Program-made: the position numbers and the translations under genes
Source: Anthoceros angustus
Taxonomy: Eukaryota > Plantae > Anthocerotophyta
DNA length: 64,000 nt
Direction: 5' to 3'
NCBI GenBank assembly: GCA_010909165.1
Contig: VJWM01000108.1
Span: 806,001-870,000 of the forward strand
Notes under the pieces: generated by a model
Seen by the model: only the letters and a program-made list of their open reading frames with translations
Databases searched by the model: none
Told to the model about the DNA's origin: nothing
Shown here: positions 5,835 to 62,387 of the stretch, piece after piece
Position numbering within the stretch: position 1 is the stretch's first letter
How the letters are laid out: each line of letters begins with the position of its first letter

Positions 5835-5881
5835 ATGGTCACAGTATGGCAACCGGACCCGTTCTGGACCCAACAAATCGG
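5835..5881 (+). pseudogene. Truncated PPR leader (first ~15 codons) interrupted by an LTR-like repeat
   Basis: ATGGTCACAGTATGGCAACCGGACCCGTTCTGGACCCAACAAATCGG matches the start of loci B and D. The same fragment recurs at ~14719 and ~15834. Confidence 0.75.
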
Positions 5882-10230: not shown

Positions 10231-10563
10231 GAAAAACGACGAGGTAGGTAGTGATCAAGCGCGGACGCCAGAGAATAGTGCTTGATTAACTCCATCCCTG
10301 GCCATCAGACACATATGGAGACCTGGATGGCTAACACTGATCCTCCTCTCATCCAACAGGGATGAAGAGCCAGACAGAATATCTCTGAGGTGGAACTGAT
10401 CAATGAATTGAGCCCAACAAGAACGTGTTCTTGTTTCGTTTCTGTCCAAAACCTGCAAACCAACTCCTGGGTACCCACGGCACTATCCTTCAGGTGGGGG
10501 TCATGCACAGCAGGACAGCCTTCTGCCATAGTCTGTTATACTCATCCGATAGCGCCCTGAACG

Positions 10564-17480: not shown

Positions 17481-17639
17481 AGCAGTCCAAAGCTCAGTCC
17501 GTGTGGGTCTACTGTCGACTCGCAAACAACTTGCATTCGCTTGCTGTTTCGGCCACCGTTTTGGATGCGTTGGAATCGCATAGAATATATAATGACAACC
17601 ATCGGACCAAAGGGAAGTCGGAAACGCCATACCGGCACA

Positions 17640-18000
17640 CACCTTTTAAAGGCAAGCAAAAGCAACAAGGTCAGCCAAAATGAGGCCTCCTGCTCCATCC
17701 GTCCAGACACGACACGGGCGTCATACCCAGCCACCAGGGCATTCCATGTCACCACATTTTTCGTGTTCACACAGTAAAAATCTGGCCTGGCGTACATCTT
17801 CCACTTCCACCACATTTACATACCCAGATATCAGGGCATTCCACATCACCACATCCTTCGTGGCCATGCTGTCGAAGACCTGGAGCGCATCTCTCAGCAG
17901 TTTGCCACATTTTGCATTCATGTCCACCAGGCAGTCGCCAACAAACAAGTCAGGAGGAATGCAGTGCACTTTTCTGCCAGATTCCAAGTCGGCGGCAAAG
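17640..18000 (-). pseudogene. PPR (L-S-P) fragment fused to the 3' flank of locus E
   Basis: DLESGRKVH…DCLVDMNAKCG…DVVMWNALISGY. Confidence 0.8.
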
Positions 18001-18124
18001 GATCAGTGTTTTGCCATCCATATCCATGTCTCTGTTTGGCAGGGGTGGAGTTAAGCCAGCACATTCACCCGAAAGCAATATTCTCTGGCTCACACACATG
18101 AGCACTGGCTACTGCTTCATTATT

Positions 18125-20002
18125 TCACGGTCGACCCCTACAACTGCAACAACCATTTGCGAATCGATGCACACGGTACCCATCCCTCACAACAATGTCT
18201 CTCTGTTCAAGCCTTGACATGATCTCCGTGGAACTGTGGCAGTCACTGCACATGTGTAGATTCTTTGTCATGTCACAGAGGAGTCCCACTGGGAGTGTTC
18301 AAGAGATCAAACGCCAGAGCTAACTTCTCAGCATGCCCACATAGCGCATCTTCCTTTTCCGTCTCACACAGTGGCTTCAACACCAAATTTGTGTGAGGTA
18401 CGCGGCCTACTTCCTGCTTCAGACGTGCATTCGTGCTCTCTAACCTTCAGCGAAATATGCTCTCTGTTTTCACCCACCGGAAATGTATGCACCTTCCTGC
18501 TCACCTCAATCGTTGCCGCTGCAAGTTTCTTGTTAGCTCCTGCTATCCTTCTGCGTGTTTCAATCCTGTCTACATCGGTCCACCTACATCTCCAAAGGCA
18601 TTGGCCATGAGCACATATGCGGGCACATCTTGGGGATCCAGCGTAACAATGCTTTCATAACACCACATTGCCCTTTCTACATTCCCGTGACTTTTGCAGG
18701 CATTCAGCAAAGACCTCAAGCCCACAACGTTACTTTGGCCCTCACATGATAATAGCATCCTCTCTGCCTCGTCCAAGTGGCCTGCACGCCAAAAAAGATC
18801 AATGATGCAAATGTAATGCTCAACTAAAGGGTCAAAGCCATCCTGTTCAGCCATGGAATCAAAGTGCTTGCGACCCTCGTCCACCAGTCCCTCATGAGTG
18901 CACGCTACTAAAAGGCAAGTAATAGTAGCATCATTAGGATGAATACCGGCGACTAACATCTTGTGCCTTCCGACCTTCAACGCAAGCACCATACCCAGAT
19001 ATCAGGGTCGTCCATGTCACCACATCCTTTTTGGCCAAGCTTTCAAAAACCTGGCGTGCATCTTCCAGTTGGCCACATTTTGCATACATGTCCACCAGGC
19101 CGGTGCCATCAAACAAGTCAGGAGGAATGCCACTGTGCAATACATCACAGTGCACTTTCCTGCCAGATTCCAAGTCCACGGCAAATGCACAAGCTTGAAG
19201 GGCAGCGACATAGACGTGACCATTCGCCTTCACTCCTGACCTACGCATCTCATGGTACAGTTGGATGGCCTCATTAGGTTTCCCGTCCTTGGCATGTGCA
19301 GAGATTAGGGTAAACCACATGAAGCCATCTGGTGTGCCCACCCTGGTGAACACATCCACGGCCTCCTGCAGACTACCTCCACATGCGCAAAATATGGTTC
19401 CCCGAGTACGCATCCGACTCGTACCCAAGTTTGACAGTCAGGTCATGAATTCGTCGCCTCAAAACCAGATCCTTCTCATCGCCACACAGTTTTAGTACAG
19501 CGTAGAACAGAGACTGAGAAATAGCACAGTGTGTCTCCGCCAGAGATTCCAGGGCTCCAACGGCCTCAGAAAGCTTCCCCTGTTGACATACGGTGCGCAC
19601 GGTTGAAGCCGTTCCAACGTCCATTTCCGATCCTGCAGGCCTGCCAGATTCAGGCTTATCCGGAGAGCCAGCTAGACTTTGGAAGAAGAAGCACCAAGAG
19701 CCAGCTGCATATCCAAGGAAACGAGCAGCTACGGGAGCTCTCCTGTATCTTGTCTGTTGTCCCACCACATGGTAGGGTCCAAAAACCCTAAACCCTCCTG
19801 CTCCTGGCAATGTGCATCGCTGGAAACCCCGTCCCCACGCGCACATTTCATCACAAAGTGAAAGTGCTGGACCTGGAGGCTCGGTCGTTAGCCAGGGGTC
19901 GAGTCCCTGTCAATTGAGCGAGAGCTCCTGGTGGAACCCCTGTACACGTACCAATTTGTTGAGAGGACTCCAGCACGGATGGGGATGCCATACTGCGGTC
20001 AT
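18125..20002 (-). pseudogene. Short PLS-PPR/DYW:KP locus E with a partly deleted PDF motif
   Basis: The leader ATG is at 20002. WWDNR is retained but SPDF…LWL is deleted. Only the N-terminal triplet and P2L2S2 are present, and the DYW ends CSCRGRP* at 18125. Confidence 0.85.
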
Positions 20003-20940
20003 CGTTCAGGGGAGGAAAAATGTATTGGACAAACAGGTATGATTCAGTAGGGTCCATGGATTGTGGAGTCCTCGGAGGGCAGACAGAAAGCGGCAGTTGA
20101 GTGTGCACCGATCGATCGTCTTGCATAGCCGACATATGTATGTTGACGGTTTCAAGAGTCCAGCATGCATACATAAATTTGTTGTCGCCATGCTGAGGCT
20201 GAGGCTGAGGCTGAGGCGGTGACAGGTAGCAGCCGGTGACCGTAAACCCTGAGATGATGTGTACCAGCCGGTAGACAGTAAACCCTGATGACGTGACCCA
20301 GCAAGCATCCTGCGCTCGCACGCCATATATATCAGGCCATCAGGAAAAAATAGCCCGGTCTACCAGGGCAGCAGATTTCCCGATGCGAACAACCAGCCTG
20401 ATGGCCTGATGGCCTCACGGGCCGATGTCGTCGTGCTCCAGCGTATGTACCTACATAAGTACCTAGTTTGTATTAGGGAAACTTTATTACCTTGCACGGT
20501 GAAAAAAATGGCCTACATAATAGGACTAACATGTACCAAAGTGCGCTAAATAACCGGAATACCTAGGTACCGTCCTCCGGGAGTATCGAGCGCCTGAGAC
20601 ATACATGCACCTGCTATGATCTTCATATTACTCGGCAGCAGATGTCACGCCACACCTGCCCCACCAAGGGAGGGAGGGCAGATCCAGCCTTCACCAAGTA
20701 GCTGAAACGCACGTATCCTATCGCTAAACCATCCAAGCCATACAAGCCACCGATGGTTATGCACAAATTACTCAAATCACCCACTGTAATTATTGCGAGC
20801 TCGTGTTATCATCGCCGCTATCCCCTGCTGATGCGCAGAGCTCATATGTTGTTGGTGGTCAGGGTTGAGGTTTCGGGTGTAGGCATTCAACGCAGCCAGC
20901 ATTCCGAGATGACCCTCACCTGCCAGTCCCAACCCAGCCC

Positions 20941-22311
20941 CAGAAAGCTTCCCTGTTGACATACGGTGCGCACGGTTGAAGCCGTTCCAACGTCCATTTC
21001 CGATCCTGCAGGCCTGCCAGATTCAGGCTTATCCGGAGAGCCAGCTAGACTTTGGAAGAAGAAGCACCAAGAGCCAGCTGCATATCCAAGGAAACGAGCA
21101 GCTACGGGAGCTCTCCTGTATCTTGTCTGTTGTCCCACCACATGGTAGGGTCCAAAACCCTAAACCCTCCTGCTCCTGGCAATGTGCATCGCTGGAAACC
21201 CCGTCCCCACGCGCACATTTCATCACAAAGTGAAAGTGCTGGACCTGGAGGCTCGGTCGTTAGCCAGGGTCGAGTCCCTGTCAATTGAGCGAGAGCTCCT
21301 GGTGGAACCCCTGTACACGTACCAATTTGTTGAGAGGACTCCAGCACGGATGGGGATGCCATACTGCGGTCATCGTTCAGGGAGGAAAATGTATTGGACA
21401 AACAGGTATGATTCAGTAGGGTCCATGGATTGTGGAGTCCTCGGAGGGCAGACAGAAAGCGGCAGTTGAGTGTGCACCGATCGATCGTCTTGCATAGCCG
21501 ACATATGTATGTTGACGGTTTCAAGAGTCCAGCATGCATACATAAATTTGTTGTCGCCATGCTGAGGCTGAGGCTGAGGCTGAGGCGGTGACAGGTAGCA
21601 GCCGGTGACCGTAAACCCTGAGATGATGTGTACCAGCCGGTAGACAGTAAACCCTGATGACGTGACCCAGCAAGCATCCTGCGCTCGCACGCCATATATA
21701 TCAGGCCATCAGGAAAAAAATAGCCCGGTCTACCAGGGCAGCAGATTTCCCGATGCGAACAACCAGCCTGATGGCCTGATGGCCTCACGGGCCGATGTCG
21801 TCGTGCTCCAGCGTATGTACCTACATAAGTACCTAGTTTGTATTAGGGAAACTTTATTACCTTGCACGGTGAAAAAAATGGCCTACATAATAGGACTAAC
21901 ATGTACCAAAGTGCGCTAAATAACCGGAATACCTAGGTACCGTCCTCCGGGAGTATCGAGCGCCTGAGACATACATGCACCTGCTATGATCTTCATATTA
22001 CTCGGCAGCAGATGTCACGCCACACCTGCCCCACCAAGGGAGGGAGGGCAGATCCAGCCTTCACCAAGTAGCTGAAACGCACGTATCCTATCGCTAAACC
22101 ATCCAAGCCATACAAGCCACCGATGGTTATGCACAAATTACTCAAATCACCCACTGTAATTATTGCGAGCTCGTGTTATCATCGCCGCTATCCCCCTGCT
22201 GATGCGCAGAGCTCATATGTTGTTGGTGGTCGGGGTTGAGGTTTCGGGTGTAGGCATTCAACGCAGCCAGCATTCCGAGATGACCCTCACCTGCCAGTCC
22301 CAACCCAGCCC
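20941..22311. repeat. 1.37-kb tandem duplication (copy of 19567-20940) joining the locus E leader to the TCP 3' end
   Basis: The two copies are near-identical; the junction lies at the microhomology c.gaaagct. Confidence 0.9.
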
Positions 22312-23899
22312 CGGAAAGCTGCTGGGAACCCTGTTGTAGCAGCATGTTGCCGAGGGGATGGTGACCTTGGTGTCCACCTTGTAGCTCCAGGCCCGAAGTC
22401 CCGGAAATGCTGATTCTGGGCACTCCACTGGGCAACGCTGTCAAGGGCATCATCAGGTTAGTGGGTGAATTCAGATTTGACTGCCCGCTCCCGCCAGACC
22501 CCAGCTGAATCTGTGTCCCAGCCGGAGCTGCCACTCTGTACATGGTGCCGCCAGAGGCTCCTGAGGGGTAAGCCGTCCACAGTTGCTGCTCCGAGGGGCC
22601 GGACATAACGGCCGGTGTGTTGGAACTGGCACTCACAGGCAGCATCCAAATGGTTCCAGGCATGGATCCGCTGCTCGCAGGACCCATCGCCCACATGGCA
22701 GACATGATGCCTGTAGAGCCCGGCTGCGATATCCCGCCGGGAACTCCAGGCCTGGCCTGCGACCGGACGGGTCGGACAGGCTCCGGATCGTCTTTGAGAC
22801 GCGTCAGCGGGCCGCCGCCCCTGTGTCGTTTCTTGAACCTGTTGTCGGACGACTCTCCGAGCCCTAACGCTTCTCCAGCATCGGAGCTAATTAAGCCTTC
22901 GTGCTGGAACATCACTTCATGGGGGCTAAGTCCAGAGTCCCCGTGACTGATTGCGGCAATCCTCCTGCTCGCCTCCAAGGCCCGGTTCACCTCCAGTACG
23001 CGGTCCTGCACATCGGAGTCCCACTCGCCTCGTCGTACATGCTCCTGCATCCGGTCAGCGTCCGAAGGTCCAATTCCTCCTATCCCCATGCCTGAATGGA
23101 GCGTAGCGTGACGGGCGGACCCAGCCGACATGCTGGCCTGCTGGCTCATGCGGCCTTGCATGGATGTACTACTCAAAGCCGGCACCGTGCCCGTTCCAGT
23201 GGCAGCAATAATGGCTGGCTCGGCCTGCTGTAGCAACCACTCGATTGTTTCGCCGTCGGACTTGTGACCCAGCTCTCTGGTAAGCTGGAAAATCCTGGCT
23301 GCACAGGTGGCCGGCATTCGAATGCGCCGACCCCTTCCATCCACTTTGGTGTGCCTATCCTTGGTGGAAGATCTCTTGGGTGCAGGCTTCTTAGGAGGGG
23401 TTTGACCCTGATCCTGAGGACCCTGGACTCCTCCACCGCCTGCTGCTCCACTCGATATTTCTTGCTGATTACCCCGAGACATGGAAAGTCCTCCCAAGCC
23501 AGACATGCCTCCACCGGACTGTTCCTGTGAGTACTCCTGCCCGATGTTAGGCATCCCTAGAGGTGGGTCACCTGCACCGCCCATGGCTGCCATTGCCTGC
23601 GCAAGAGTACCCCCCGAGATATGAGGCCCTGGACTCTGCTGCTGTTGTTGTTGTTGATGTTGGAGCGAATGTTGGTGAGAGTGGAGTTGCTGGTGCTGTT
23701 GCTGTTGCTGCTGATGTTGCTGGTCTAATATTGCCGAATTCGATGGAGCTCCATACCCCGACAGAGCCCTCGACTGGGATTCTTGCTGCTGTGGATGATA
23801 CTGCTGTGCCAACTGCGTTGCCAACCCACTCTCTGAACTGCGGTCACCTGACTCTCGCTGTGCATCTGCTTTGCTTAAGCCATGACCACCTGACTCCAT
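22160..23899 (-). CDS. TCP: Class I TCP transcription factor (579 aa, intronless)
   Basis: [62 protein letters not shown] is the class I TCP domain. Poly-Q tracts are also present. Confidence 0.95.
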
Positions 23900-30421: not shown

Positions 30422-30463
<42 letters not shown>

Positions 30464-33462
30464 CTTGTGGCGACAATTTTTTCTGGACCCTACCATGTGA
30501 TGGGACAACAGACGAGATAAGAAGAGCTTCCGTTCGCCTTACTTGCGGCGTAGAGGGTCCGGCGAGGTCTTCTGGTTGAACAACATGTTCAATCCAGCTT
30601 GGGTTGATGAGCAGCTCGTTTCCTTGGATATGCACATGGGTCATGGTGCCTCCCGTTCCGACTCCAGCTCAGTGTCAAACTTGGGGACGAGTCGACTGCA
30701 TACTTGGGGAACCATATATTGCGCATGTATGCACCTAGAGGTAGGCCAGAGGAGGTCATATGGATGTGTTCACCAGGGTAGGCAAACCAGATGTTTTCAC
30801 GTGGTCTTTCATCGTCTCTGCATATGCTAAGTGGAAGCTGCACGCCAGGTTTTTGACAGCATGGCCGAAAAGGATGTGGTGACATGGAACGCCCTGATAG
30901 CTGGGTATGCAAAATGTCGTAAACTGAAAGATGCACGCCACATTTTTGTTGACAGCATGAACACAAGGAATTGCCTTGATAGGTGGGTATGCCCAGCAAG
31001 GGCTCGGACATGAGGCACTCGTTCTGTATGGCCAGATGGAGCAGGAAGGCTTGCTTTTGGCTGACGATGTTACTTTTGCTTGCCTTCTGAAGGCCTGTGC
31101 AAGCACTGGTGCCTTGCAGAAGGGCAGGCAGCTGCACTCACAGACTGTAGAAAGAGGACTGCTGGATGACGTAGTGTTGGTTAACTGCCTGGTGGACATG
31201 TATGCAAAATGTGGTGAACAGAAAGTTGCACGCCAGGTTTTGGAAAGCTTGGCCTCGAAGGATGTGGTGACTTGGACCACCCTGATTGCTGGGTATGCAC
31301 AGCAAGGGCTTGGATATGAGGTGCTCGCTGTGTATGGACAGATGCAGCAGCAGCAGATGCACCAGGTGCATGAACAGACTTCTTTTGGCTAACCATGTGA
31401 CTTTTGCTCGCTTCCGAAGGCCTGTGGAAGCACTGGTGCCTTACATAGGGGCAGGGAGTTGCACTCCCAGATTGACAGAAGAGGATTGCTGGATGACGTA
31501 GTGGTGGGCACCTCCGTGGTCGACATATATGCAAAATGTGGTGAACTGGAAGATGCACGCCAGGTTTTTGACAGCTTGACCACAAAGAAGGTGGTGACGT
31601 GGAATGCCCTGATCGCTGGGTATGCACAGCAAGGACTCGGCCAAGAGGTGCCTGTTGTGTGTGGACAAATGCAGTAGGCTGGCCTCATTTTGGCTGACGA
31701 TGTCACTTTTACTTGCCTTCTGAAGGCCTGTGGAAGTACTGGTGCCTTACAAAAGGGCAGACAGCTGCACTCACTGATAGTCGAAAAAGGGCTGGTGGAT
31801 GACGTAGTAGTGGGTACCTGCCTGGTGGACATGTATGCCAAATGTGGCGAACTGGAAGATGCACGCCAGGTTTTTGACAGCATGAACACACAGAATGTGG
31901 TGACATGGAGCTCCCTGATATCTGGGTATGGTTCTTGTGATGAAGGTCACAAGGCACTAGCTTGTTTTGAGGAGATGTTTCATGCCGGTATTCAGCATAA
32001 TGATGCTACTTTTGGTTGCGTTTTAGTGGCATACAGTCACGAGGGCCTGGTTGACGAGGGTCATGAGCACTTTGATTCCATGGCTGAACAGCATGGCATC
32101 AAACCTAGTATTGAGCATTACACCTGATTGATCTGCTTGGGCGTGCTGGCCATGTAGATGAGACAGAGAAGATGCTATTATCATGCAAGGGCCAAAGTAA
32201 TGTTGTGGGGTTGACGCCTTTGGCCGCATATGTGCTCATGGACAATGCCTACGCAGATACAGGTAGGTGGACCGATGTAGACAGGATTGAAACACACACA
32301 AGGGCAGCAGGAGCTAACAAGGAACCTGCAGGTTTGACCATTGAGGTGGATAAGCAGGTCCACAGATTTCTGGTGAAGTTAAGGTAGAGAGCACGAATGC
32401 CCGTCTGAAGCAGGAAGGAGGCCATGTACCTCACGGGAAGTTGGTTTTAAGCCACTGTCTGAGAAAGAGAAGGAAGACTTGCTTTGTGGGCACGCTGAGA
32501 AGTTCTAGGTGCAGCTTCCTCCTGCCAAACACGCAAAAATCATCCAGAAATACCTCCATGAACTTCCGCAGAAAATCTCGGAAGATAGCATTCACCACAC
32601 GCTGAAAAGTGGCAGGAGCGTTGCACAAGCCGAAAGGCAGCTTGGAATAAGCGTAAGTGCCCCAATCGGTTGTGAACGTAGTCTTGTCCTGATCCTCCCT
32701 CCTCAACGAAATCTGATTGTAACCCGAGTACCCATCTAGAAAACTGTACATTTCATGGCCAGCCACCGTGTCCAGCACGCTGTCCATGAAAGGCAAGGGG
32801 TGGTGGTCCTTCTTCGTTGCTTCATTAAGCTTCCTGAAATCCTGACACACCCGTACCTTCCCCTGTTGCTTCTTAGGTACAATTACAATGGGGGCGACCC
32901 ACTCACTGGTAAGCACCGGATAAATCACCCCGGCTTCCAAGTATTGGTCCAGCTGATCCTTGACGACCATAGAATACTTGGGATTCAGCCTGTATTGCTT
33001 GATCCTTCAGAGTGCCCTCCTTCAAATCAATTCGTGTATCCCAGTTCTTCCGAATTCGCCATGTCGTAATCTTGAAGGCAAACACATCGACATATTCTCT
33101 AAGGACCCTATAAAATTCTTCTTTTCTACCACTCCTAGGTGCACGGAGATCTTGACCACCTTCGGGCTCTAGCTCCAAGTCTTCTACAGCTGGATCTACA
33201 TAAGTCCCTTCCGGACTGCTACCTGCACTATTCCCTGATCCTTCGTCGGGAAAATCGCGATCATAGGCTCTACCCTTTGGCGTTTGGTCTCTTGTCCCAG
33301 TGGGACCCCTCTGGTGCTAACAAAGAGATTACGTGTGTGCAGTGACTGCCACAGTTCCACGGAGATCATGTCAAGACTTGAACAGAGAGACTTCGTTGTA
33401 AGGGATGGTTACTGGTGCATCGATTCGCCAATGGTTGTTGCACTTGTCAGAGTCGACCTTGA
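30268..33462 (+). pseudogene. PDF/PLS-PPR/DYW:KP locus F, a genuine pseudogene
   Basis: TGG>TGA in the PDF motif (TM*WDN), further in-frame stops, a deletion in E1/E2, and an RT fragment inside the DYW. It ends CTCQSRP*. Confidence 0.9.
32503..33269 (-). mobile_element. Ty3/gypsy reverse transcriptase fragment inserted in the DYW of locus F
   Basis: WVAPIVIVPKK…RVCQDFRKLNEAT…FLDGYSGYNQI…PFGLCNAPATFQR…FMEVFLDDFCVF. No LTR or TSD is present. Confidence 0.9.
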
Positions 33463-37044: not shown

Positions 37045-38177
37045 TGTAGAGCAAAAGTAACACCCCTTACTATGCGGCCAGTAACGAAGCGACAAGTGCT
37101 GGCTTCCCAGCAGTTTAGTCACTACACAGCCAGTAAGGAAGCAACAAGTGTTGGCTTCCCAGCAGTCTAGAACCTCGCCAATTCACTCCACAAGAGACTT
37201 GCACGATTCTCAGCGCTCTCAACCTCGCGACACAGCACTAGGTTCCAAGTAGCCCGCCGTCCACTGACGGCTCGCAGGCCACCTCCTCGAGGTGCTGCTC
37301 TTTATTGCAAGAATACAACGATGGAATCTGGCTATCTACGCCCTCTTTATTGCAAGAATACAACGATGGAATCGCTATCTCGCCTCTTTATTGCAAGAAT
37401 ACAACGATGGAATCGGCTATCTCACGCCCTCTTTATTGCAAGAATACAACGATGGAATCGGCTATCTACGCCTCTTTATTGCAAGAATACAACGATGGAA
37501 TCGGCTATCTCGCCCTCTTTATTGCAAGAATACAACGATGGAATCGGCTATCTCGCCTCTTTATTGCAAGAATACAACGATGGAATCGGCTATCTCGCCT
37601 CTTTATTGCAAGAATACAACGATGGAATCGGCTATCTACGCCTCTTTATTGCAAGAATACAACGATGGAATCGGCTATCTACGCCCTCTTTATTGCAAGA
37701 ATACAACGATGGAATCGGCTATCACGCCTCTTTATTGCAAGAATACAACGATGGAATCGGCTATCTCGCCCTCTTTATTGCAAGAATACAACGATGGAAT
37801 CTATCTACGCCTCTTTATTGCAAGAATACAACGATGGAATCGGCTATCTCGCCTCTTTATTGCAAGAATACAACGATGGAATGCTATCTACGCCCTCTTT
37901 ATTGCAAGAATACAACGATGGAATCGCCTATCTACGCCCTCTTTATTGCAAGAATACAACGATGGAATCTAGCTATCTACGCTCAAGCTCGCCTTGATTC
38001 CATGACAAGCTCACTAGCTAGCTCTCCACAGCTCTCTCAACATAAGGCTTGCAGCGCACACTTGCCCGCTCTCTCAAAGAGTGAGTCCCACTTGTTCCTC
38101 AAAGCCCTTCTCTAGCCCTTATATATCCCGCAGCCTAACCTTAACTAGGCAGCTGTTAAAATCTAGGGATTCTTACA
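37045..38177 (-). mobile_element. Solo-LTR-like element with an internal minisatellite
   Basis: The minus strand runs TGTAAG…TATATAA…AATAAA…CTCTACA and is homologous to the LTR-like repeat at 14767. It is flanked by a 103-bp direct repeat (36949-37052 and 38360-38462). Confidence 0.6.
37297..37983. repeat. ~43-bp minisatellite, 16 copies (ctctttattgcaagaatacaacgatggaatcggctatctacgc)
   Basis: A constant 31-bp core with a slightly variable tail; there are no unique spacers. Confidence 0.95.
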
Positions 38178-39519: not shown

Positions 39520-40458
39520 AGCTCCTGAAATTATGAACAAAGAAACATATGGATGTGATGTCGAGAGCTACCTGAATTTAAGTAAACCAAAATCCTATAT
39601 TGAAGAACATTGATAGGGTCCACTCATTTAAGAGCAGTTTTGTATGAATCTTTCTATATGTATCTTACCATATAACGCTTGTTCTTGTTCTTATATCTTC
39701 AATATTTTTTATATTTAATAGATTATTTTCAGTGTAAAAGTTGGAAGATATATTATATTTTAGTTGCATATAAAATTGTTATTTATATTTTTTCCTAGAT
39801 ATATAAAAAGTTAATAGTGAGAATCTACTTTTGTACGTAATAAACACAATTTTTGAACTAATGGGCGGATTTGAAGCTGAAGCAAATGGACTCCCTTCCT
39901 TGATATGAAACAGCTACCGTATCTATCTATCTGTCTTATTTTTGTCCACCTCAGCCTGAGCCTAAGCAGTTATGAGTCCCTTTTTTTTTGGCAAAGAAGA
40001 GGGCTGAGGGATGCATCGATTAAAAGTGAAGGATTCCGTAATGGAGCTCCGGGCATTTTTTGGTCCAGGGTCCAGGGTCCAGGCAGGTCCTTGTGCTTGC
40101 AACGCGGGGGGGTTATACGTATGTATATAGGGCGGTCGCGTCCCTTGGATGTGAAATGGGGATTCTCTTCTCCTTCCGTTCAGTGAGCCTGCAACGATTC
40201 TGGTCCTGTCACTGGGTACTGGGTCCTGCCGAACTTGGTATGTGACATAACTTCCGTGCACGCATTCAGGTCCAGCGTCTCTTTGCCAGAGGTGGTGGTG
40301 ACGAGGATGCTCACCGGCGCCCGCTTTCCTCTCCTAATTTCTGTTTGCTCCTTTGGCGGGGCAGTGTCTGTAAGATCGGAGAAACTTTAAGGAGGAAGAG
40401 AAAAAATTGGATGTGTTGTAGCACACATCACATCCGCATCCGATTCGGTGATCTGGAG

Positions 40459-42597
40459 ATGGTGGATATTCGAAAAGCCAGCAGCGCTTCCAGGCGCAGC
40501 AGCAGCAGCAGCAGCAGCAGCACATCAGCAGCCCATGACAAGGGTCCCGGAGCGGAAGCGTCGTCAGCCGTGTACCCTGTGAAACGCTTGTCCACGGTCC
40601 CAAAGCGAGCTTCTCAGCAGAATCCTGTACAGGAGGGGGGGAATCCAGTGACCAGCGCCGCCGATCTCCAGAAGCGGCCGTCTACAGGCGGCTCTTCAGC
40701 GCAGTCGGAAGCCGATAATGCCCAGGCTGCTGCTGCTGCCGAGGTTGCCCGGCTGACAAAGGAAATCGCTTCTCTGAGACAGGAGGCCCAACAGAAGTGT
40801 GCGGACTTGGCCAGCCTGCAGCTCAAATTGGACGAAAGAAGCAAAGAGGTGGCGAGCTTGGAAGTTAAGGTCGATGAGGGCAACCGGGAAGTGGGCAAGC
40901 TGAGGCAGCAGGTGGCAGACAGGGACCAGGAGCTTGCCATTCTGCAGCAGGCCATAGGGAAGAAGAAGGATCCTTCCAAGCCGGTGCCGGTGAAGGAAGC
41001 GGAGGCGGGCATTCCAAGCCTGAACCCTGGAGACGCACAAGATTCAACTGCGCAGTTTTTCGTTTCCTTGGAGGAGTGCCTGAAATGCAGGGAATGCGGG
41101 AGGCCCAATCTGTACACGGAGAAGGACCACCCGTTGCTGCGGGCAGCCGAGGACTCCAAGTGGTTGTCGGACGAACTGGACATTTTGAGCCACAACAAGC
41201 AACTGTACCTGGAGATGGAGCAGAGGCTGGCGCACATCAAGGAGCAGCTGGTAGCGCCGGATGAATCCAAGCAGCAGCAGCAGCGGCAGCAGCAGCAGCA
41301 GCCCTTCTTCCAGCCCAAGCCCGGGACGGACAGCAGCAGCTTCTACAGAGCTCGAGGCCTGGACCCGGCCAAGTGGAAGCAAGAACGCAACTTCTCCAAG
41401 GGCAAGAGAGGTAAGTCCTTCCAGTGCGCTCTCATTTACACCGATTGCACGCAGGTGCTGGATGTGAGCAACCCCCCGGCCGGCCTGGCCATCGAGGACA
41501 TCCCCTCCTTGATGCACTCCGACATCGACCAGTTCCTGGCCGCCAGGGGTCTGCGGGAGTTCGATGCCGCCGTGTACGAGTGGTTCGTGGTCCCCGGCCT
41601 GCCTCTGGACCGAGAGGCCAGCAGCTTGGAGAATGTGAGCAACGCGGCCATAGTCATCCACCCCAAAGACCGCAACACCTTCTGGCACAACAAGACGCTG
41701 CACTCTCAGCTCAGCCTCTCCCTCAAGTACCTCGGGGACAGGACGGGCGAGCTCCTGCACCGCCTGCGGGTGCACGAGGACTGCATGGACGCTCTCTGGC
41801 AAGAACGCTCCTACTTCACGCGAGAAGTGCTGAGCCGGCAGCTATGGCCGGCGGATGCAAAGAGCGAGAAGGGAGCCAAGGGTTTGCTGGCCGGGATGCT
41901 GGCAGGCCTGAGGAAGAACGTGGTAGGGAAGGAGGAGGAGGTTTGCAGGCTGGAGGCTAGGTTGCAGGCGGCGGAGAAGCGGGAGGAGCAGCAGGGAGCG
42001 TTCTTACAGGAGGCCAAGACGCTCATGGCCAAGAAGGACGAAGCCCTAGCCTACTACAACCATGCCCTCCAGACTTGCCGAGGTCAGGTGAAGACGATCC
42101 AGAGCAAGAGCGAGGCGAGCGAGTGCCAACTCTGGGCTCTCCGCCACAAGCTTGCGGTCTTGGCCGAGCCCATGTGCAAGATCTGGGTGCGGACGTTCCT
42201 GGACTCTGTTCGCAGGCAGATCGGGCAGGACCTGTGTGCCGCGTTCGCGGACGTGGTTCCATTTCAGGAGGCGGCGACCAGCCCGCACTCCAGCAAGAAC
42301 TGGAATGCCACCCTGTTTCAGATCTACCAGACTCCGGATGCCTGCGCACTCTTGGCTTCCAAGGGCCTGCACCGGGAGCTCCTGGAGCTCACCCGGGTGG
42401 GTGCCCAATACACCGACGGCCACCAGACGTTGCAGGAACTGGGAAACGCGGCCGCCACCAGCGCCCGCAAGCCAGAGGTTGCGGAAGCCATCTGCAGTTT
42501 GGATGTGCCCGACTCCTACCGCCACGCGCTCAAGCAGCTCTACGCCTACGCCTATGGCTCCGATAACGATGTCCAACACGATCGCCTGGCTCTCTGA
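40459..42597 (+). CDS. Intronless coiled-coil protein of unknown function (~712 aa from ATG 40459; ORF track starts at 40345)
   Basis: A long uninterrupted ORF with strong GC3 codon bias, a good Kozak context (gagATGG) and two heptad-rich segments. Confidence 0.8.
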   Translation: MVDIRKASSASRRSSSSSSSSTSAAHDKGPGAEASSAVYPVKRLSTVPKRASQQNPVQEGGNPVTSAADLQKRPSTGGSSAQSEADNAQAAAAAEVARLTKEIASLRQEAQQKCADLASLQLKLDERSKEVASLEVKVDEGNREVGKLRQQVADRDQELAILQQAIGKKKDPSKPVPVKEAEAGIPSLNPGDAQDSTAQFFVSLEECLKCRECGRPNLYTEKDHPLLRAAEDSKWLSDELDILSHNKQLYLEMEQRLAHIKEQLVAPDESKQQQQRQQQQQPFFQPKPGTDSSSFYRARGLDPAKWKQERNFSKGKRGKSFQCALIYTDCTQVLDVSNPPAGLAIEDIPSLMHSDIDQFLAARGLREFDAAVYEWFVVPGLPLDREASSLENVSNAAIVIHPKDRNTFWHNKTLHSQLSLSLKYLGDRTGELLHRLRVHEDCMDALWQERSYFTREVLSRQLWPADAKSEKGAKGLLAGMLAGLRKNVVGKEEEVCRLEARLQAAEKREEQQGAFLQEAKTLMAKKDEALAYYNHALQTCRGQVKTIQSKSEASECQLWALRHKLAVLAEPMCKIWVRTFLDSVRRQIGQDLCAAFADVVPFQEAATSPHSSKNWNATLFQIYQTPDACALLASKGLHRELLELTRVGAQYTDGHQTLQELGNAAATSARKPEVAEAICSLDVPDSYRHALKQLYAYAYGSDNDVQHDRLAL

Positions 42598-42981
42598 TGA
42601 TCGGGAGGATACACTGCATCATCCATACACTACTACACACCATCAAGCGCGAGCTGCTCCTCATCGAACGAGCAGCTCCATGCCCATCCTGCTACTCCTA
42701 GATATCATGGCAATTCCACCAAAGTCACCACCGCATTTCTGCAACCGCACGAGCGAGCTGCCACACTTCGCAGTACACATACATGTGCACCGAGCCGTTA
42801 CAAAAGACCAGGCTCCACCCCAGCAGCCCCACCATCACAGGGGGACGGGGGAGCATGACGACCCAAGTGCATATCACACAGATTGAGAATCGAGGTTTGT
42901 AGAGGCAAGGAGCATGTAAATAGTTTGTGGCGCTGTTGAGAAGAAGAGAAGTCTGCCAGAACCCTACTACTACTACAGCTA

Positions 42982-43734
42982 CTACCGGTCGTCGGACGGT
43001 GCCTGCGTGATGCCATACTTGAGCAACAATTGGTTCAAAGCGTCAGCTGAAGTGACCTGGTACTGCACACTGCCGTCGTGACCTAAGCTCACTTCCGCCA
43101 CCTCAAGCTTTTCGGCTGACAGACTGGTGCTGTCCATGGTCTTACTCAAAATCTTCAAAGCCAGCTGCACAGCTTCCTCTCTGGTGATGTCATCCTTGTA
43201 GTCCTGCTTCAACATGGACTGCGCGGCCTGGTTGTTGGCACCGATAGCCCCGGCCTTCCATCCACCGTAATTGCCGCTGGGATCACTCATGTAGAGCTGA
43301 AACCCGAAATTTTTGTCGTACCCTGCGAACAGAAAAGAGACACCGAAGGGGCGCAAACCCCCGAACTGCGTGTACCCTTGCTTGGTGTCACACAGGGCCT
43401 GCACCAGCTGCTCCACTGGAATGGCCTCCTGGTACTGGTAGGTGAACCTCTGGGCCTGCAACCTAGCCGTGTTGATGAGGATGTTAGCGTCCGCCATAAT
43501 CCCGGCCACTGCGCACGCTACGTGGTCATCGATCTTGTACATCTTCTCGGTGGACTTGGCTGTGGCCAGCAGCTTGGACGTGACCATCTTCTCGGCGGCA
43601 AGCACCACCCCGTCTTTGGCCAAAATCCCGATGGTTGCCCCGGCATTGCCGATGGCCTGCATGGCATACTCCACCTGGTACAGTCTCCCCTCGGGAGAGA
43701 AAATGGTAGTCCTGGAATCATAGCGTCTCGACAT
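42982..43734 (-). CDS. PAC1: 20S proteasome subunit alpha type-4 (250 aa)
   Basis: [25 protein letters not shown]…[14 protein letters not shown]…[11 protein letters not shown]. The true ATG is at 43734. Confidence 0.97.
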
Positions 43735-43938
43735 GGCGTCAATCAACCCTCTCCTCTGAACAATTTCCTGCTCCCAATGTCCTCAATTCTTCCAATCTCA
43801 ATGCACGTTCCGTGTGCTCAATTGAAGAAGACTTACCCAATACCCTAACCTTGTTCTCGTCCGTTAGAAATTTCGCCTGTTCTCAGGAAACGAAAAAACG
43901 AAGATTCTAAATTCCGAACGAAAAGGAGTATCTTCAAC

Positions 43939-44346: not shown

Positions 44347-47300
44347 ATGGCCACAGTTGTTTGGACGCAACGAATTGGTGTCTGCTCAGGGATTTTACGA
44401 GGAGCTGCCGCTCACCTCATCTTAGGGAGTCAACCCCTGGCAAAGAAAGGCTCCAGGTGCAACAGTGTAAGGAGCCCGGCACGTCCGCTTCCGAGAAAAT
44501 GTGTGGGTGGTGACGGGTTTTCCAGCGATGGTCGTTGCCAGGAGCAGGAGCACTTGTGGCAGCAATTTTTTCTGGACCCTACCATGTGTTGGGACAATAC
44601 ACGAGATAACAAGAGCTCCCGTTCGCCTGACTTCCGGCGTAAGGGGTCCGGCGAGGTGCTGTGGTTAAACAGCACGTTTAAGCCAGCTTGGGTCCACGAG
44701 CAGCTCATTTCCTTGGATATGCGGATGGGCCATGTTACCTCCCCTTCCGAGTCCAGCTCTCCGGATAAGCCACGACTTGGCAGGCGTGCAGGATCGGAAA
44801 TCGGCGTCGTAACTGCTGCAACCGTGACCTTGTTATGTCAGCTGGGGAAGCTTCTTGAGGCCGTCGAAGCCCTGGAATCTCTGGCGCAGACGAATTCTGC
44901 TGTTTCTCAGTCTCTTTTTTACACCGTGCTAACACGGTGTACAGCTAAGAAAGATTTGGCTGTGGGGCGACGAGTTCATGATCTCGCTGTCAAGCTTGGG
45001 TATGAGTCGAGTGCATACTTGGGGACCCATATCTTGCGCATGTATGCATGTGGAGGCAGACTGCAGGAGGCCATGGATGTGTTCACGCTAAGCACGGGAA
45101 ATCTATGGAGGCCATACAACTCTACCATGAGATGCGTAGGTCAGGAGGGAAGGCGGATGCTCACGTCTTCGTAGCTGCCCTTCAAGCTTGTGCATTTGCC
45201 GCCGACTTGGAATCTGGCAGAAAAGTGCACTGTGATGTGGTGCGGAGTGACTTTTCTACTAACTTGTTCGTCGGCAGCTGCCTGGTGGATATGTATGCAA
45301 AATGTGGTGAATTAGAATATGCTCGCAGGTTTTTGACAGCATGAACGCAAACAATGTGATGACATGGAATGCCCTGATCGCCGGGTATGCAAAACGTGGT
45401 GAACTGAAAGATGCACGCCAGGTTTTTGACAGCATGATTACAAAGAATGTGGTGACATGGAATGCCCTGATCGCCGGGTATGCAAAACGTGGTGAACTGA
45501 AAGGTGCACGCCAGGTTTTTGACAGCATGATCACAAAGAGTGTGGTGACATGGACGGCGCAGAGTGCTGAGTATGTACAGCAAGGACTCGGCCAAGAGGC
45601 ACTCCTTGTGTATGGACAAATGGAGCAAGAGGGCCTCACTTTGGCTAACGATGTTACTTTTTCTTGCCTTCTGAAAGCCTGTGGAAGCACTGGTGCCTTA
45701 CAGAAGGGCAGGCAGCTGCACTCACAGATTGTTGAAAGAGGACTGCTGGATGACGTAGTGGTGGGCAACTGCCTTGTGGACATGTATGTAAAATGTGGTG
45801 AACTGGAAGATGCACGCCAAGCTTTTGACAGCCTGGCCACAAAGAATGTGGTGACATGGACGGCGCTGATTGCTGGGTATGTACAGCAAGGACTCGCCAA
45901 GAGGCGCTTGTGTATGGACAAATGGAGCAGGAGGGCCTCATTTTGGCTAACCATGTTACTTTTGCTTGCCTTCTGAAGGCCTGTGGCACTGGTGCCTTAC
46001 AGAAGGGCAGGCAGCTGCACTCACAGATTGTCAAAAGAGGACTGCTGGATAACGTTATGGTGGGCAACTGCCTGGTGGACATGTATGCAAAATGTGGTGA
46101 ACTGGAAGATGCACGCCAGGTTTTTGACAGCTTGGCCACAAAGATGTGGTGACATGGACCCTGATTGCTGGGTATGCACAGCAAGGACTTGGCCAAGAGG
46201 CGCTTGTTGTGTATGGACAAATGGAGGAGGCGGGCCTCATTTTGGCTGACCATGTCACTTTTTCTTCCCTTCTGAAGGCCTGTGGGAGCACTGGTGCCTT
46301 ACAGACGGGCAGGCAGCTGCACTCACAGATTGTCGAAGAGGACTGCTGGATGACGTAGTGGTGGGCAACTGCCTTGTGGACATGTATGTAAAATGTGGTG
46401 AACTGGAAGATGCACGCCAGGTTTTTGACAGCATGATCACGAAGAACTTGTTGACATGGACCGCCCTGATATCTGGGTATGGTACTTGTGATGAAGGTTA
46501 CAAGGCACTAGCTCTTTTTGAGGAGATGTTAGTTGCCGGTATTCAGCCTCATGATGCTGCTTTTACTTGACTTTTAGTAGCATGCAGTCATGAGGGACTG
46601 GTGGATGAGGGTCGCAAGCACTTTGACTCCTGGCTGAACAGCATGGCATCAAACCTACTATGGAGCATCACACCTGCATGATTGATCTTCTTGGGCGTGC
46701 AGGCCATTTAGATGAGGCAGAAGATGCTATTATCATGTGAGGGCCAAAAGCGATGTTGTGGGATTGACGTCTTTGTTGAATGCCTGCAAAAGTCACGGGG
46801 ATATAGAGAGGGCGATGTGGTGTTTTGAAAGCATTGTTAGACTGGACCCTCAGCAGGCGTCTGCGTATGTGCTCATGGCCAATGCCTACGCTGATGGAGG
46901 TAGGTGGTCTGATGTAGACAGGATTGAGACACAGAGAAAGGTAGCAGGAGCTAACAAGAAACCTGCAGTGGCAACCATTGAGGTGGAGAAGCAGGTGCAT
47001 AGATTTCTGGTGGCAGAAAAGAGAGATGATATTGCGCTGAAGGTAGAGAGCACAAATGCACGTCAGAAGCAGGAAGGAGGCCACGCACCTCACACAAAAT
47101 TGGTCTTGAAGCCATTGTGTGAAAAGGAAAAGGAAGATGTGCTTTGTGGGCATGCTGAGAAACTAGCTCTGGCGTTTGGTCTCTTGAACACTCCGAGTGG
47201 GACACCTCTGGTTGTGATGATGAATCTACGCATGTGCAGTGACTGCCACAGTTCCACGGAGATCATGTCAAGGCTTGAACAGAGACATTGTTGTAAGGGA

Positions 47301-47358
47301 TGGGTACCGTGTGCATCGATTCTCAGGTGGTTGTTGCAGTTGTAAGGGTCGACTGTGA
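44347..47358 (+). CDS. PDF/PLS-PPR/DYW:KP locus G; leader, PDF and first PPR are in one open frame, with downstream frameshifts
   Basis: ORF 44275-45174 reads MATVVWTQ…HLWQQFFLDPTMCWDNTRDNKSSRSPDFRRKGSGEVLWLN…GKLLEAVEALESL…. It has two SS motifs, and the DYW ends CSCKGRL* at 47358. Confidence 0.85.
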
Positions 47359-58838: not shown

Positions 58839-61800
58839 ATGGTATTTCTATTGGCACTCGACGACGGGTCTGTGCGCGTGGCATCAAGATGCTCAGCGCC
58901 ATGGTTGTCTGGAGCGTTTCAATCCGGTGGTGGAAACGCTCCCATCCTCCTGACTTCGAGGAACCAACGCTGGGCGCACAGCCGAGTCTTGAGGTGCAGC
59001 TTTCCCTTTGCAAACAACAAGCCAGCTTGCGTGGATGTGCAGCTTGCTGCTCCGGACATGAGGGTGGGTCGTTCTGCCTCCGACAGAGGCTTACTGGTTG
59101 ATGCTGTCCTTGGCAGCCCCGTACCAGATGATAGGCGTGTAACGGTGGAAACCGTGAGCACGTTGTGTGGTGAGGGAAATCTCGCTGAGGCTGTTGAGGC
59201 TTTGGGACTTCTGGGGCAGACAGCAGAATGTCGCGTTTCCAAATCTCTCTTTTATGCTGTCCTGAAGGAGTGTGTGGTCAGGAAGGATCTTGCTGGAGGT
59301 CGCCGTGTGCATGCCTTGGCAGTGAAGGAGGGGTACCAGTCGGACACGTTCCTGGCCAACCACATACTTCGAATGTATGCCTCTCTTGGCAGCTTGCAAG
59401 AGGCGATGGATGTGTTCACCGTGGTTCCCAAACCAGATACCTTTATCTGGTATTCCATCATTTCTGCCCATGTCAAACACGGGCTAAACAAGCAGGCCAT
59501 AGAGCTGTATCATCGGATGCGCAGGTCGGGTGTGAAGCCAGATGGTAGCCATGTGTTTGTGGCAGCCCTTCAGGCTTGTGCGAGGGGTTCAGACTTGAAA
59601 ACTGGCCAGCAGGTGCATGCTGATGTTGTGGCCAGTGGCGTGGAGCTCGATTTGTTCGTCTGTACCTGCCTGGTGGACATGTACGCAAAGTGTGGGAGCT
59701 TGGAGGATGCTCGGGGTGTGTTTGACGGACTTGGTCAGAAGAATGTGGTGACGTGGAATGCCATCATAGCAGGGTATTCACAGCACGGCAGGGGGCAGGA
59801 AGCCCTCCGTCTGTACAGGGCTATGCAAGATGAGGGCATCGTTGAGCCCAATTCGGTGACATTTTTGTGCCTCTTACAGGCATGTGCAAGTGTAGGCACC
59901 CCAGCTTTGGAGAACGGGAAGCAGCTTCATGCACAAATCGAAGCACTAGGACACCAGGCTGATGTGTTTGTAGCTAGCAGTTTGGTGAACATGTATGCAA
60001 AGTGTGGCAGCTTGGGAGAGGCTCACCGAGTTTTTAACGGACTTGGTAGGAAAGATGTTGTGACATGGAATGCCATGATCGCAGGGTATTCCCAGCAGGG
60101 CATGGGGCAGGAAGCCCTTCAGCTGTACAGGGTAATGCAAGATGAAGGTATTGTTGCGTCCAATGCTGTGACATTTGTGTGCCTCCTGCAGGCATGTGCA
60201 AGTGTTGGCAGCCCTGCTTTGGGGAACGGGAAGCAGCTTCATGCTCAAATCAGAGAATGCGGATATGAAGCTGACGTGTTTGTAGCCAACAGTTTAGTAA
60301 ACATGTATGCAAAGTGTGGCAGCTTGGGGGCTGCTCGGAGACTGTTTGATGACCTTGGTGAAAAAGATGTGGCGACATGGACTGTGATGATAGCTGGATA
60401 TTCCCAGCAGGGCATGGGCCAGGAAGCCCTTCATCTCTACAGGGCTATGCAAGCAGATGGCATCACTGTGCCTGATCCAGTCACATTTGTGTGCCTTGTG
60501 CAGGCATGTGCAAGTGTTGGCCCTATGGCGTTAGAGACAGGGAAGCAGCTCCATAAGCAGATTAGAGAACATGGACACCAAGCTGATGTGTACGTAGCTA
60601 GCAGTTTGGTGAACATGTATGCCAAGTGTGGAAGCCTGGAAGACGCTCAGAGTCTGTTTGAGGAAATTGATCAAAAAACTGTGGTAACATGGACTGCCAT
60701 GATAGCCGGATATTCCCAACAGGGAATGGGCCAGGAAGCCCTTCGTCTGTACAGCACTATGCAAGAGGAAGGCATCACAGTGCCTGATTCGGTGACATTT
60801 GTGTGCCTCCTGAGGGCATGTGCTATCGTGGGCACCGCGGCTTTGGAGAAGGGGAGGCAGCTTCACACACAAATCAGAGAACAAGGACATCAAGCGGATG
60901 TGTTTGTAGCCAATAGTCTGGTGAACATGTATGCAAAGTGTGGCAGCTTGGGGGATGCTCAGGGTGTGTTTGATGGACTTGGTCAAAAAGATGTGGTAAC
61001 GTGGAATGCTATGATAGCAGCATATTCCCAGCAAGGCATGGGCCAAGAAGCCCTTCGGCTTCACACTGCTATGCAACAAGAAGGCATCGTTGTGCCGGAT
61101 TCTGTAACCTTGGTGACCCTCCTGCAGGCCTGTGCAAGTGTGGGCACCACGTCATTGGAGAAGGGGAACCAGCTTCATATGCAAATTAGAGAACAAGGAC
61201 TTGAAACTGATGTGTTTGTTGCCAGCAGTTTGGTAAACATGTATGCAAAGTGTGGCAGCTTGGAAGATGCGCAGAGTGTGTTTGATGGACTTGGTCAAAA
61301 AGATGTGGTGACATGGAATGCCATGATAGCAGGATATTCCCAGCAGGGCATGGGCCAGGACGCCCTTCGTCTGTACGGTGCTATGCAAGAAGAAGGCATG
61401 ACAGTGCCTGATTCCCTGACATTCGTGTGCCTCCTGCAGGCATGTGCAAATGTGGCAGCTTTGCATCTGGGAAGACAGTTGCATGCCCAGATTGTGGAAC
61501 AAGGGCTTCAAGCTGATACGTTTGTAGCCAACAGCTTGGTAAACATGTATGCGAAGTGTGGCAGCATGGTTGATGCACAGCAAGTGTTTGATGCTCTGTC
61601 CCGAAGGGATGTTCTTGCCTGGAATGCACTGATTGCAGGCTACACCTGTCAAGGAGATGGCGACTTGGTCTTTGGCCTTGTCCATCAGATGGAAGAAGAT
61701 GGCATATGGCCAGACAGCATCACACTCCTTTGTGTACTGACAGTGTGCAGTCATGCGGGTCTGGTGAACAAGGGACAGGAATACTTTGCGGCTATGAGCA

Positions 61801-62387
61801 GATGCTATGACATCACTCCTACAGTGGACCACTACACATGCATGGTGGATCTCCTGGGTCGTACAGGGCAACTGGATGATGCCCTCGCTTTAGTAAGCAC
61901 CATGCCTGACCGGCCTAATTCTGTAGTTTTGCACACTCTCCTAGGTGCTTGTCAAAAGTGGGGCAACCTGGAGGTGGGACGCCATGCTTTCAATCAAGCA
62001 GTGAAGCTAGACAAGCAAGATTCTGCAGCATATGTGTTGATGTCAAACATATACACAGGTGCCCGGATGTTGAAGGAGGCACAGGAGCTGCAGGCCAGGA
62101 GAACCAATATCAGGGCGTTGAAGCAGCCAGGCCAGAGCTGGTGGACAGACAGAGAAGGACTCGTGCATAGTTTTGTAGTTAAGCCTCCCAAAAGAGAAAG
62201 CAAGGCTGATACATGTCCTCTCCAATATGGAAAGCAAGCTACTCGTGCCACATCTACCAGCAAATATACTGGATGGGATCATAGAAAGGAAGACGATATT
62301 CGTGGTCAGCAGCAAGAAGCTCGCTATGGCAAATACCTCACAAAACAACTCACGCGAGCGACGTGGTATTTATCGTGGGAATGTTGA
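58839..62387 (+). CDS. Organelle-targeted PLS-PPR of the WW type (1182 aa), E1-E2-PG box, with the DYW decayed
   Basis: An intact intronless ORF with about 27 PLS motifs, then E1/E2 and KQPGQSWWTD…VHSF. The N-terminus is transit-peptide-like and there is no PDF motif. Confidence 0.93.
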   Translation: MVFLLALDDGSVRVASRCSAPWLSGAFQSGGGNAPILLTSRNQRWAHSRVLRCSFPFANNKPACVDVQLAAPDMRVGRSASDRGLLVDAVLGSPVPDDRRVTVETVSTLCGEGNLAEAVEALGLLGQTAECRVSKSLFYAVLKECVVRKDLAGGRRVHALAVKEGYQSDTFLANHILRMYASLGSLQEAMDVFTVVPKPDTFIWYSIISAHVKHGLNKQAIELYHRMRRSGVKPDGSHVFVAALQACARGSDLKTGQQVHADVVASGVELDLFVCTCLVDMYAKCGSLEDARGVFDGLGQKNVVTWNAIIAGYSQHGRGQEALRLYRAMQDEGIVEPNSVTFLCLLQACASVGTPALENGKQLHAQIEALGHQADVFVASSLVNMYAKCGSLGEAHRVFNGLGRKDVVTWNAMIAGYSQQGMGQEALQLYRVMQDEGIVASNAVTFVCLLQACASVGSPALGNGKQLHAQIRECGYEADVFVANSLVNMYAKCGSLGAARRLFDDLGEKDVATWTVMIAGYSQQGMGQEALHLYRAMQADGITVPDPVTFVCLVQACASVGPMALETGKQLHKQIREHGHQADVYVASSLVNMYAKCGSLEDAQSLFEEIDQKTVVTWTAMIAGYSQQGMGQEALRLYSTMQEEGITVPDSVTFVCLLRACAIVGTAALEKGRQLHTQIREQGHQADVFVANSLVNMYAKCGSLGDAQGVFDGLGQKDVVTWNAMIAAYSQQGMGQEALRLHTAMQQEGIVVPDSVTLVTLLQACASVGTTSLEKGNQLHMQIREQGLETDVFVASSLVNMYAKCGSLEDAQSVFDGLGQKDVVTWNAMIAGYSQQGMGQDALRLYGAMQEEGMTVPDSLTFVCLLQACANVAALHLGRQLHAQIVEQGLQADTFVANSLVNMYAKCGSMVDAQQVFDALSRRDVLAWNALIAGYTCQGDGDLVFGLVHQMEEDGIWPDSITLLCVLTVCSHAGLVNKGQEYFAAMSRCYDITPTVDHYTCMVDLLGRTGQLDDALALVSTMPDRPNSVVLHTLLGACQKWGNLEVGRHAFNQAVKLDKQDSAAYVLMSNIYTGARMLKEAQELQARRTNIRALKQPGQSWWTDREGLVHSFVVKPPKRESKADTCPLQYGKQATRATSTSKYTGWDHRKEDDIRGQQQEARYGKYLTKQLTRATWYLSWEC

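Follow-up and report, generated by a model that had tools for sequence, protein, structure and literature searches.

Pentatricopeptide repeat (PPR) tracts bind RNA in parallel, with the N-terminal repeats towards the 5′ end and the DYW domain at the edited base, and PPR editing factors are under engineering as programmable RNA base editors, including U-to-C editors derived from a consensus of hornwort GRP-type proteins. Hornwort editing factors of the PPR-DYW:KP class, GRP subtype, are said to have been described in 2020 by Gerke and by Gutmann. In DYW:KP domains of the GRP subtype, KP takes the place of the PG box and HAE that of HSE at the zinc site, and the C-terminus reads GRP; the designer proteins KP2 and KP3 are of this type (PMC9478123). 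The accessible descriptions of such factors begin at the PPR tract and make no mention of a PDF domain at the N-terminus. The PDF domain is known from the OSB proteins, which bind ssDNA in plant organelles and in which it lies C-terminal to an OB-fold, often in two to five copies. According to reviews, the PDF of AtOSB1 alone is sufficient for binding single-stranded DNA (ssDNA), and OSB1 and OSB2 prefer ssDNA over double-stranded DNA or RNA (PMC6963530; PMC4166229); AtOSB2 forms a tetramer, and OSBs are abundant and associate with nucleoids (PMC6963530). Here we analysed 64,000 nucleotides (nt) of the hornwort Anthoceros angustus (contig VJWM01000108.1, positions 806,001–870,000, forward strand; hereafter the window, to which all positions refer), in which a locus designated G (44347–47358, forward strand) places a single OSB-type PDF domain, without an OB-fold, N-terminal to a PPR tract.

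Locus G probably belongs, as a dead or decaying copy, to a real family of nuclear genes for organelle-targeted PLS PPR editing factors, in whose intact members the PDF would act as a grip on single strands. The layout of the family would run from a presequence through one OSB-type PDF, a flexible Ser/Pro linker, PLS repeats and E motifs to a DYW:KP domain of the GRP subtype. This arrangement is found intact in P0062, a protein of 753 amino acids encoded on a 9.1-kb hornwort-type contig assembled from a public sequencing run, which consists of a leader, a PDF (residues 80–145), a PLS tract, an E motif and a DYW domain that contains KKPAVAGIEV and GHAEKLA and terminates in GRP, and which is, judging by its sequence, the intact counterpart of the copies in the window. 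A preliminary description of the window had proposed a family of editors built of transit peptide, PDF, PPR tract and DYW:KP domain; the architecture holds for P0062, whereas the loci of the window are frame-broken as assembled and G has also lost Lys88. The features of locus G are as follows.

44347–44550, forward strand: start codon and presequence-like leader, residues 1–68 (from translation; the ATG aligns with those of copies B and D)
44551–44730, forward strand: OSB-type PDF domain, predicted as helix, three short strands, helix (from profile matches, pairwise alignment and AlphaFold2 fold)
44731–44808, forward strand: Ser/Pro-rich linker from the PDF to the PPR tract (from translation; weakly conserved relative to P0062)
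44809–45174, forward strand: first PPR-like helices, in the frame of the PDF (homology leaves this frame near 45087; TAG at 45172–45174)
45084–46743, forward strand: PLS repeat array, in pieces only (from tblastn with P0062 and three-frame translation): frame 3, 45084–45335; frame 2, 45326–45910; frame 1, 45910–46143; frame 3, 46122–46340; frame 2, 46337–46678; frame 1, 46630–46743
46568–46570, forward strand: private nonsense codon TGA, in frame on the homology path (TGC, Cys, in copies A, B, C, D and F, the five others that contain this stretch)
46749–47285, forward strand: E motif followed by the greater part of the DYW:KP domain, all in a single frame (Pfam E_motif, 3.2e-14; DYW_deaminase, 7.5e-21)
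47220–47222, forward strand: ATG (Met) at the Lys88 position (AAG in copies A–D)
47281–47358, forward strand: last 25 codons of the DYW:KP domain in a different frame, after a 2-nt (AG) deletion at 47280, ending GRL-stop and not GRP-stop

From the ATG at 44347, a frame runs for 275 codons. Its first 69 residues include ten Arg or Lys, and the earliest acidic residue is at position 56. The first 40-residue segment of the PDF (44551–44670) follows in frame with this ATG, as do the first PPR repeats behind it, in agreement with the preliminary description, and the conserved block continues to 44730 (KPAWV...LDMRMG). The signature residues of the domain include SPDF (44623–44634) and LWLN (44659–44670), and LW is present.

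A 74-position profile built from the window's own copies was searched against 1.84 billion representative proteins and returned 555 matches at E<=1e-3, of which 137 lie at E<=1e-10; many matches carry 2–13 repeats of the motif near the C-terminus. The profile scored locus G itself at E 9e-51, and the named matches included an OSB1-like protein of Populus (E 3.5e-24) and an OSB3-like protein of Chenopodium (E 1.8e-49), with the Pfam SSB domain present on several matches. Aligned directly, G and the Populus protein share 46% identity over 70 residues (E 3e-17), with both PDF copies of the latter. An AlphaFold2 model of the G segment, based on an alignment of 79 PDF domains in which 15 positions are near-invariant, reached a mean predicted local distance difference test score of 81.6. 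When this fold was searched against the Swiss-Prot portion of the AlphaFold database, the real matches were confined to Arabidopsis OSB1, OSB3, OSB2 and OSB4, each in its PDF region; the best, residues 183–244 of AtOSB1, had a template modelling score of 0.78, a root-mean-square deviation of 1.2 Å and 40% identity, both structures being predicted. The fold clusters of the same database returned OSB-type proteins as well. No solved structure in the PDB matched the G PDF by sequence or by fold, Pfam holds no model for the PDF domain, and the ESM Atlas gave only phage-like clusters with scores <=0.75, below the noise level.

By sequence and predicted fold, the segment is a genuine OSB-type PDF domain, as had been surmised from the motif. 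It shares with the PDFs of OSB1–4 a domain of ~55–60 residues (LW..FF..P..WWDNR..K...PDF..K..GE.LW....P.WV..QL..LD.) that occurs there, too, in organelle-targeted proteins, and a helix / beta-hairpin / helix fold is predicted in both. PPR-linked PDFs differ from OSB PDFs in forming a cluster of their own, marked by LWLN...KP.WVD. The N-terminal open reading frame (ORF) of G has no Pfam match to an SSB/OB domain and its leader runs directly into the PDF, so that G is not an OSB protein. The domain shares in the apparent decay of this copy: three of the 15 near-invariant positions of the family are altered in G only (W>C, R>T and K>N), giving CWDNT versus the WWDNR of the family, which copies B, C and D retain. 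The position of the segment close behind a presequence-like leader is what could be said for regarding it as part of a cleaved targeting peptide, or its resemblance to a PDF as accidental. This reading is extremely improbable in view of E-values down to 1e-49 against named OSB proteins among 1.84 billion sequences, a confidently predicted fold identical to the PDF regions of OSB1–4, and the near-invariant positions; on these grounds, chance resemblance as such is already refuted.

At the other end of the locus, the DYW:KP domain shows its KP box at 46956–46985 (KKPAVATIEV) and HAE at 47148–47168 (GHAEKLA), with CSDCH at 47235–47249, and the Pfam models PPR, E_motif and DYW_deaminase match pieces of G as well as the ORF of copy B. 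The C-terminal domain is assigned to DYW:KP of the hornwort GRP subtype by its KP box and HAE, the GRP end itself being seen in copy B and P0062; the preliminary description had named the domain correctly. The family thus resembles the hornwort GRP factors in PLS repeats, E motifs, KP box, HAE and, in copy B and P0062, the GRP end, whereas G departs from them in being broken, in carrying Met at Lys88 and in ending with Leu. Lys88 is essential for U-to-C activity, and its replacement turns designer proteins into C-to-U editors (PMC11845758). The 133-residue domain of copy B has K at position 88 (TKNLR), and copies A–D read VTKNLR where G reads VVMMNLR; contigs built from reads of related organisms have A at 47221.

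Downstream homology was traced by tblastn with P0062, the closest intact relative, of which residues 81–752 were covered. Along G, this homology passes through frames 1>3>2>1>3>2>1>3>1, that is, eight changes, with indel sites in the assembled sequence at ~45087, 45330, 45905, 46142, 46337, 46630, 46718/46749 and 47280. A single open frame from the start codon of G to the end of the DYW domain is absent as assembled, according to ORF scan, tblastn and translation. The preliminary description had read PDF, PLS repeats, E motifs and DYW domain in one frame; this reading fails at the stop at 45172–45174, at the eight frame changes and at the TGA at 46568–46570.

As assembled, the copies in the window would not be working editors: all are frame-broken, and G additionally lacks Lys88. 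That G is truly a dead gene we consider likely. Three of its defects are substitutions and not indels (the private TGA, Met for Lys88 and Leu for the terminal Pro), and its private substitutions in the E/DYW region look neutral, being spread 6:5:7 over the codon positions, with 6 synonymous and 12 not. The competing account takes G and its neighbours to be functional and ascribes the frame breaks to consensus errors that polishing could not remove from the assembly of a high-copy gene family; it draws on several observations that weigh against decay. The ratio of nonsynonymous to synonymous divergence among the copies is 0.14–0.41, which would be odd if all were long dead, and the private substitutions of copy C look selected despite its deletions. 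Seven of the eight frame changes in G run in the direction of a 1-nt loss, and short runs of AG or A/T are the site of several breaks. A DNA run of the organism itself contains 0.79 of the words of the unique neighbour at 40345–43746 (3.4 kb) and is not among the holders of G, and its RNA run contains 0.25 of the words of G versus 0.63 of those of the neighbour. Assembly error would leave unexplained the three substitution defects of G and its neutral-looking private substitutions, a ~770-nt insertion and a nonsense codon in copy F, and several indels common to members of an old two-gene segmental duplication. It also sits poorly with an intact 3.5-kb PPR ORF and an intact 1.46-kb DYW:KP ORF in the same window. 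On balance, error throughout is unlikely, and decay remains the preferred explanation for G. Homopolymer errors in particular were considered as the cause of the frame breaks and rejected, because no break lies in a long homopolymer and three of the defects are substitutions. Reads of related organisms yielded only ~100-nt contigs of paralogues, with both indel states at several of the break sites of G; the PDF-PPR family, PDF part included, is very abundant in DNA- and RNA-labelled runs of these organisms.

To place the fusion in a wider context, PDF-PPR proteins were counted as cluster representatives among the best 150 profile matches. Ten of these 150 carry an N-terminal PDF on a PPR protein, and in nine of the ten the DYW domain is missing. 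The nine come from Adiantum (two), Pteridium (two), Ceratopteris, Selaginella moellendorffii, Diphasiastrum and two other contigs, one of them encoding three successive PDFs; a further PDF-PPR protein, a close relative from Adiantum nelumboides, was added by a later search. In the fern and lycophyte proteins (for example Adiantum KAI5076972.1, Ceratopteris KAH7429238.1, Selaginella XP_024517303.1, Diphasiastrum KAJ7231026.1) the PDF stands at the N-terminus directly before PLS-type repeats, as in the hornwort family. They differ in having no DYW domain and leaders that are short or absent, and their annotation goes no further than hypothetical or PPR protein. In some gene models from lycophytes and ferns, hardly any leader precedes the PDF, and organelle targeting of those proteins is thus not evident, which counts against a uniformly organellar family. 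A protein on a 4.7-kb transcript-like contig (P0003, contig L002, run SRR4210093) has three consecutive PDFs followed by a long PLS tract without DYW, so that the number of PDFs is variable among PPR proteins, just as among OSBs. A word-indexed protein search with residues 55–110 of the N-terminal ORF of G found no match, a result that reflects its length window and 5-residue words and says nothing on the frequency of the fusion; by the same method, residues 80–145 of P0062 returned only P0062 itself, and residues 17–80 of the protein P0064 returned itself and one relative from Adiantum nelumboides.

The preliminary description linked the fusion to DYW:KP domains, and one could read the PDF as a special adaptation of U-to-C editors, for example as a means of retaining the substrate for the reverse reaction or of steering the domain to ssDNA. 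Every PDF-bearing copy in the window does belong to the DYW:KP/GRP type, and so does the intact P0062, and the clades with PDF-PPR proteins among the best 150 matches (the hornwort-type contig, lycophytes and ferns) are those that have DYW:KP. The absence of any DYW domain from nine of the ten representatives runs counter to this, as does the presence of a PDF-PPR protein in Selaginella moellendorffii, given that Selaginellales show C-to-U editing only (PMC4915041). With DYW-less PDF-PLS proteins in ferns and lycophytes, including a Selaginella without U-to-C editing, a link between the PDF and U-to-C editing is not supported.

The window itself supplies a further case. At 58839–62387 on the forward strand lies an intact PLS PPR gene of 1182 amino acids with a PG box (KQPGQSWW), the DYW part of which is decayed or truncated. 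It is 51% identical to G over 146 residues, in an alignment that starts exactly at the last helix of the PDF, the first two thirds of the domain being absent. By its sequence, the gene looks like the descendant of a PDF-bearing ancestor that lost most of the domain, and such ancestry in a PG-box protein is again at odds with a PDF reserved for DYW:KP editors. We regard a special adaptation to U-to-C editing as quite improbable, and among the ten representatives an association with DYW:KP is not borne out.

In a tree of PDF domains, a single group of 15 takes in 11 of the 12 PPR-linked PDFs (SH-like approximate likelihood ratio test, 82); the PDF of the window pairs with that of P0062, and the PPR label is clustered on the tree beyond all 500 shuffles. 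A single origin of the PPR-linked PDFs is possible on this sequence evidence; the 76 columns of the alignment resolve little, and the tree does not establish one origin.

What the PDF might do in intact members can be approached from the geometry of the proteins. Because PPR tracts bind RNA in parallel, a PDF joined by a flexible linker to the first repeat would come to lie upstream of the footprint, at a distance from the edited base. In intact members, we propose, it would be an unspecific single-strand grip, which might strengthen binding and prevent the upstream RNA from folding, or might anchor the factor to single-stranded nucleic acid in the transcribing nucleoid, while specificity would still be set by the PPR code and the chemistry by the DYW domain. 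Such a role would be shared by the PLS proteins of seed-free plants at large and would not be particular to U-to-C editing. Since OSBs prefer ssDNA to RNA, a grip on RNA is not the obvious reading, a point that tells against this part of the proposal.

Alternatively, the PDF of PPR proteins could be a module for protein–protein contact or oligomerisation, or a tag for nucleoid localisation. The tetrameric state of AtOSB2 and the abundance and nucleoid association of OSBs (PMC6963530) would fit such a module, as would the flexible linker between PDF and PPR tract. However, ssDNA binding is the one biochemical activity that has been reported for a PDF, and we consider a protein module a serious but rather unlikely alternative, preferring the nucleic-acid grip.

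To our knowledge, MORF proteins are absent from seed-free plants. It is conceivable, though we would put it forward only tentatively, that one ancient fusion before the split of hornworts and vascular plants placed a PDF before PLS factors, that it took over part of the helper job in MORF-less seed-free plants, and that it was lost where other helpers evolved. A built-in PDF could then increase the affinity for RNA or couple editing to the transcribing nucleoid. MORF, ORRM (with its RRM) and RRM-PPR fusions (PMC13386178) offer a parallel, in that an additional unspecific nucleic-acid-binding or helper module accompanies a PLS factor and PPR fusions are known; here, by contrast, the module is a PDF, is N-terminal in cis and occurs in seed-free plants.

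The preliminary description knew of no account of this architecture, and none was found: our literature search, including a 2026 survey of editing-factor fusions and a 2026 paper on the OSB family, found no mention of a PDF on PPR proteins, although a remark in Gerke 2020, Gutmann 2020 or Zaegel 2006 may exist. Locus G itself is of modest interest, as one of the decayed copies that make up a tandem cluster. The family matters more, since natural members of the GRP clade carry a conserved, foldable N-terminal domain that was left out of the designs, and the activity of GRP designs is low, at 22–26% in E. coli (PMC9478123). If the PDF raises affinity, keeps RNA unfolded or localises the factor, its omission could explain part of this low activity, and the domain would be a pointer to an editosome helper in MORF-less plants. 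For OSB research, the fusion offers a second protein context for the PDF and a natural test of its action on RNA.

The remaining copies of the family in the window carry PDF-related segments at 2563–2751 (B), 7588–7760 (C), 10777–10969 (D) and 30459–30650 (F), with a fragment at 6187 and remnants on the reverse strand at 19732–19785 and ~21105–21140. The consensus that the preliminary description placed in B, C, D and F, with a remnant in E, is present as related segments, but the motifs are broken and need repair to be read. The copies are listed below.

2563–5120, forward strand: copy B, PDF split by a T5/T6 frameshift and by 3-nt and 5-nt deletions, N-terminal half decayed
7588–10227, forward strand: copy C, PDF without its first helix (no LWQQFF), many small deletions
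10777–13980, forward strand: copy D, PDF split by a T5 frameshift as in B, more frame changes downstream
17628–19785, reverse strand: remnant of copy E, PDF truncated after WWDNR, private substitutions even over codon positions
30459–33409, forward strand: copy F, PDF with TGG>TGA and PDF>PYL, DYW domain interrupted

The frameshift of B and D is a T5 run, versus T6, between LWQQFF and LDPTM. Copy B is the sole copy with a long ORF, an intact frame of 486 amino acids (3660–5120) that comprises the last PLS repeats, E motifs and DYW domain and ends in CKGRP. The DYW domain of copy F is split by the ~770-nt insertion (~32506–33277, forward strand). A microsatellite of CAGGAG/GAGCAG (44520–44550) encodes a (Q/E) run directly before the PDF of G and recurs at the same place in B, D and F, with variable length (shortest in G, longest in F).

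The array originated in the duplication of a two-gene unit (A-B, C-D), spacers included: positions 1–4239 match 8206–12536 at 89.5%, and 3284–6184 match 12121–15062 at 91.6%, with several indels common to the copies. The head of C is closer to that of D (94%), which suggests later exchange between copies. A separate tandem duplication of 1.39 kb with 99.3% identity (19563–20949 versus 20937–22320) holds both truncated PDF remnants and extends to the 3′ end of an ORF for a TCP transcription factor (22160–23899, reverse strand).

Upstream of G, short tandem repeats with a period of ~43 nt and ~95% identity (37298–37982, forward strand) lie inside an ORF at 37321–38115 with weak Pfam matches only, and a 750-residue ORF at 40345–42597 (forward strand) has no Pfam match. 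Divergent from G and 600 nt upstream of its start, an intronless ORF for a proteasome alpha-type subunit (42982–43746, reverse strand; 250 amino acids from the ATG) may be a retrogene or simply an intron-poor gene.

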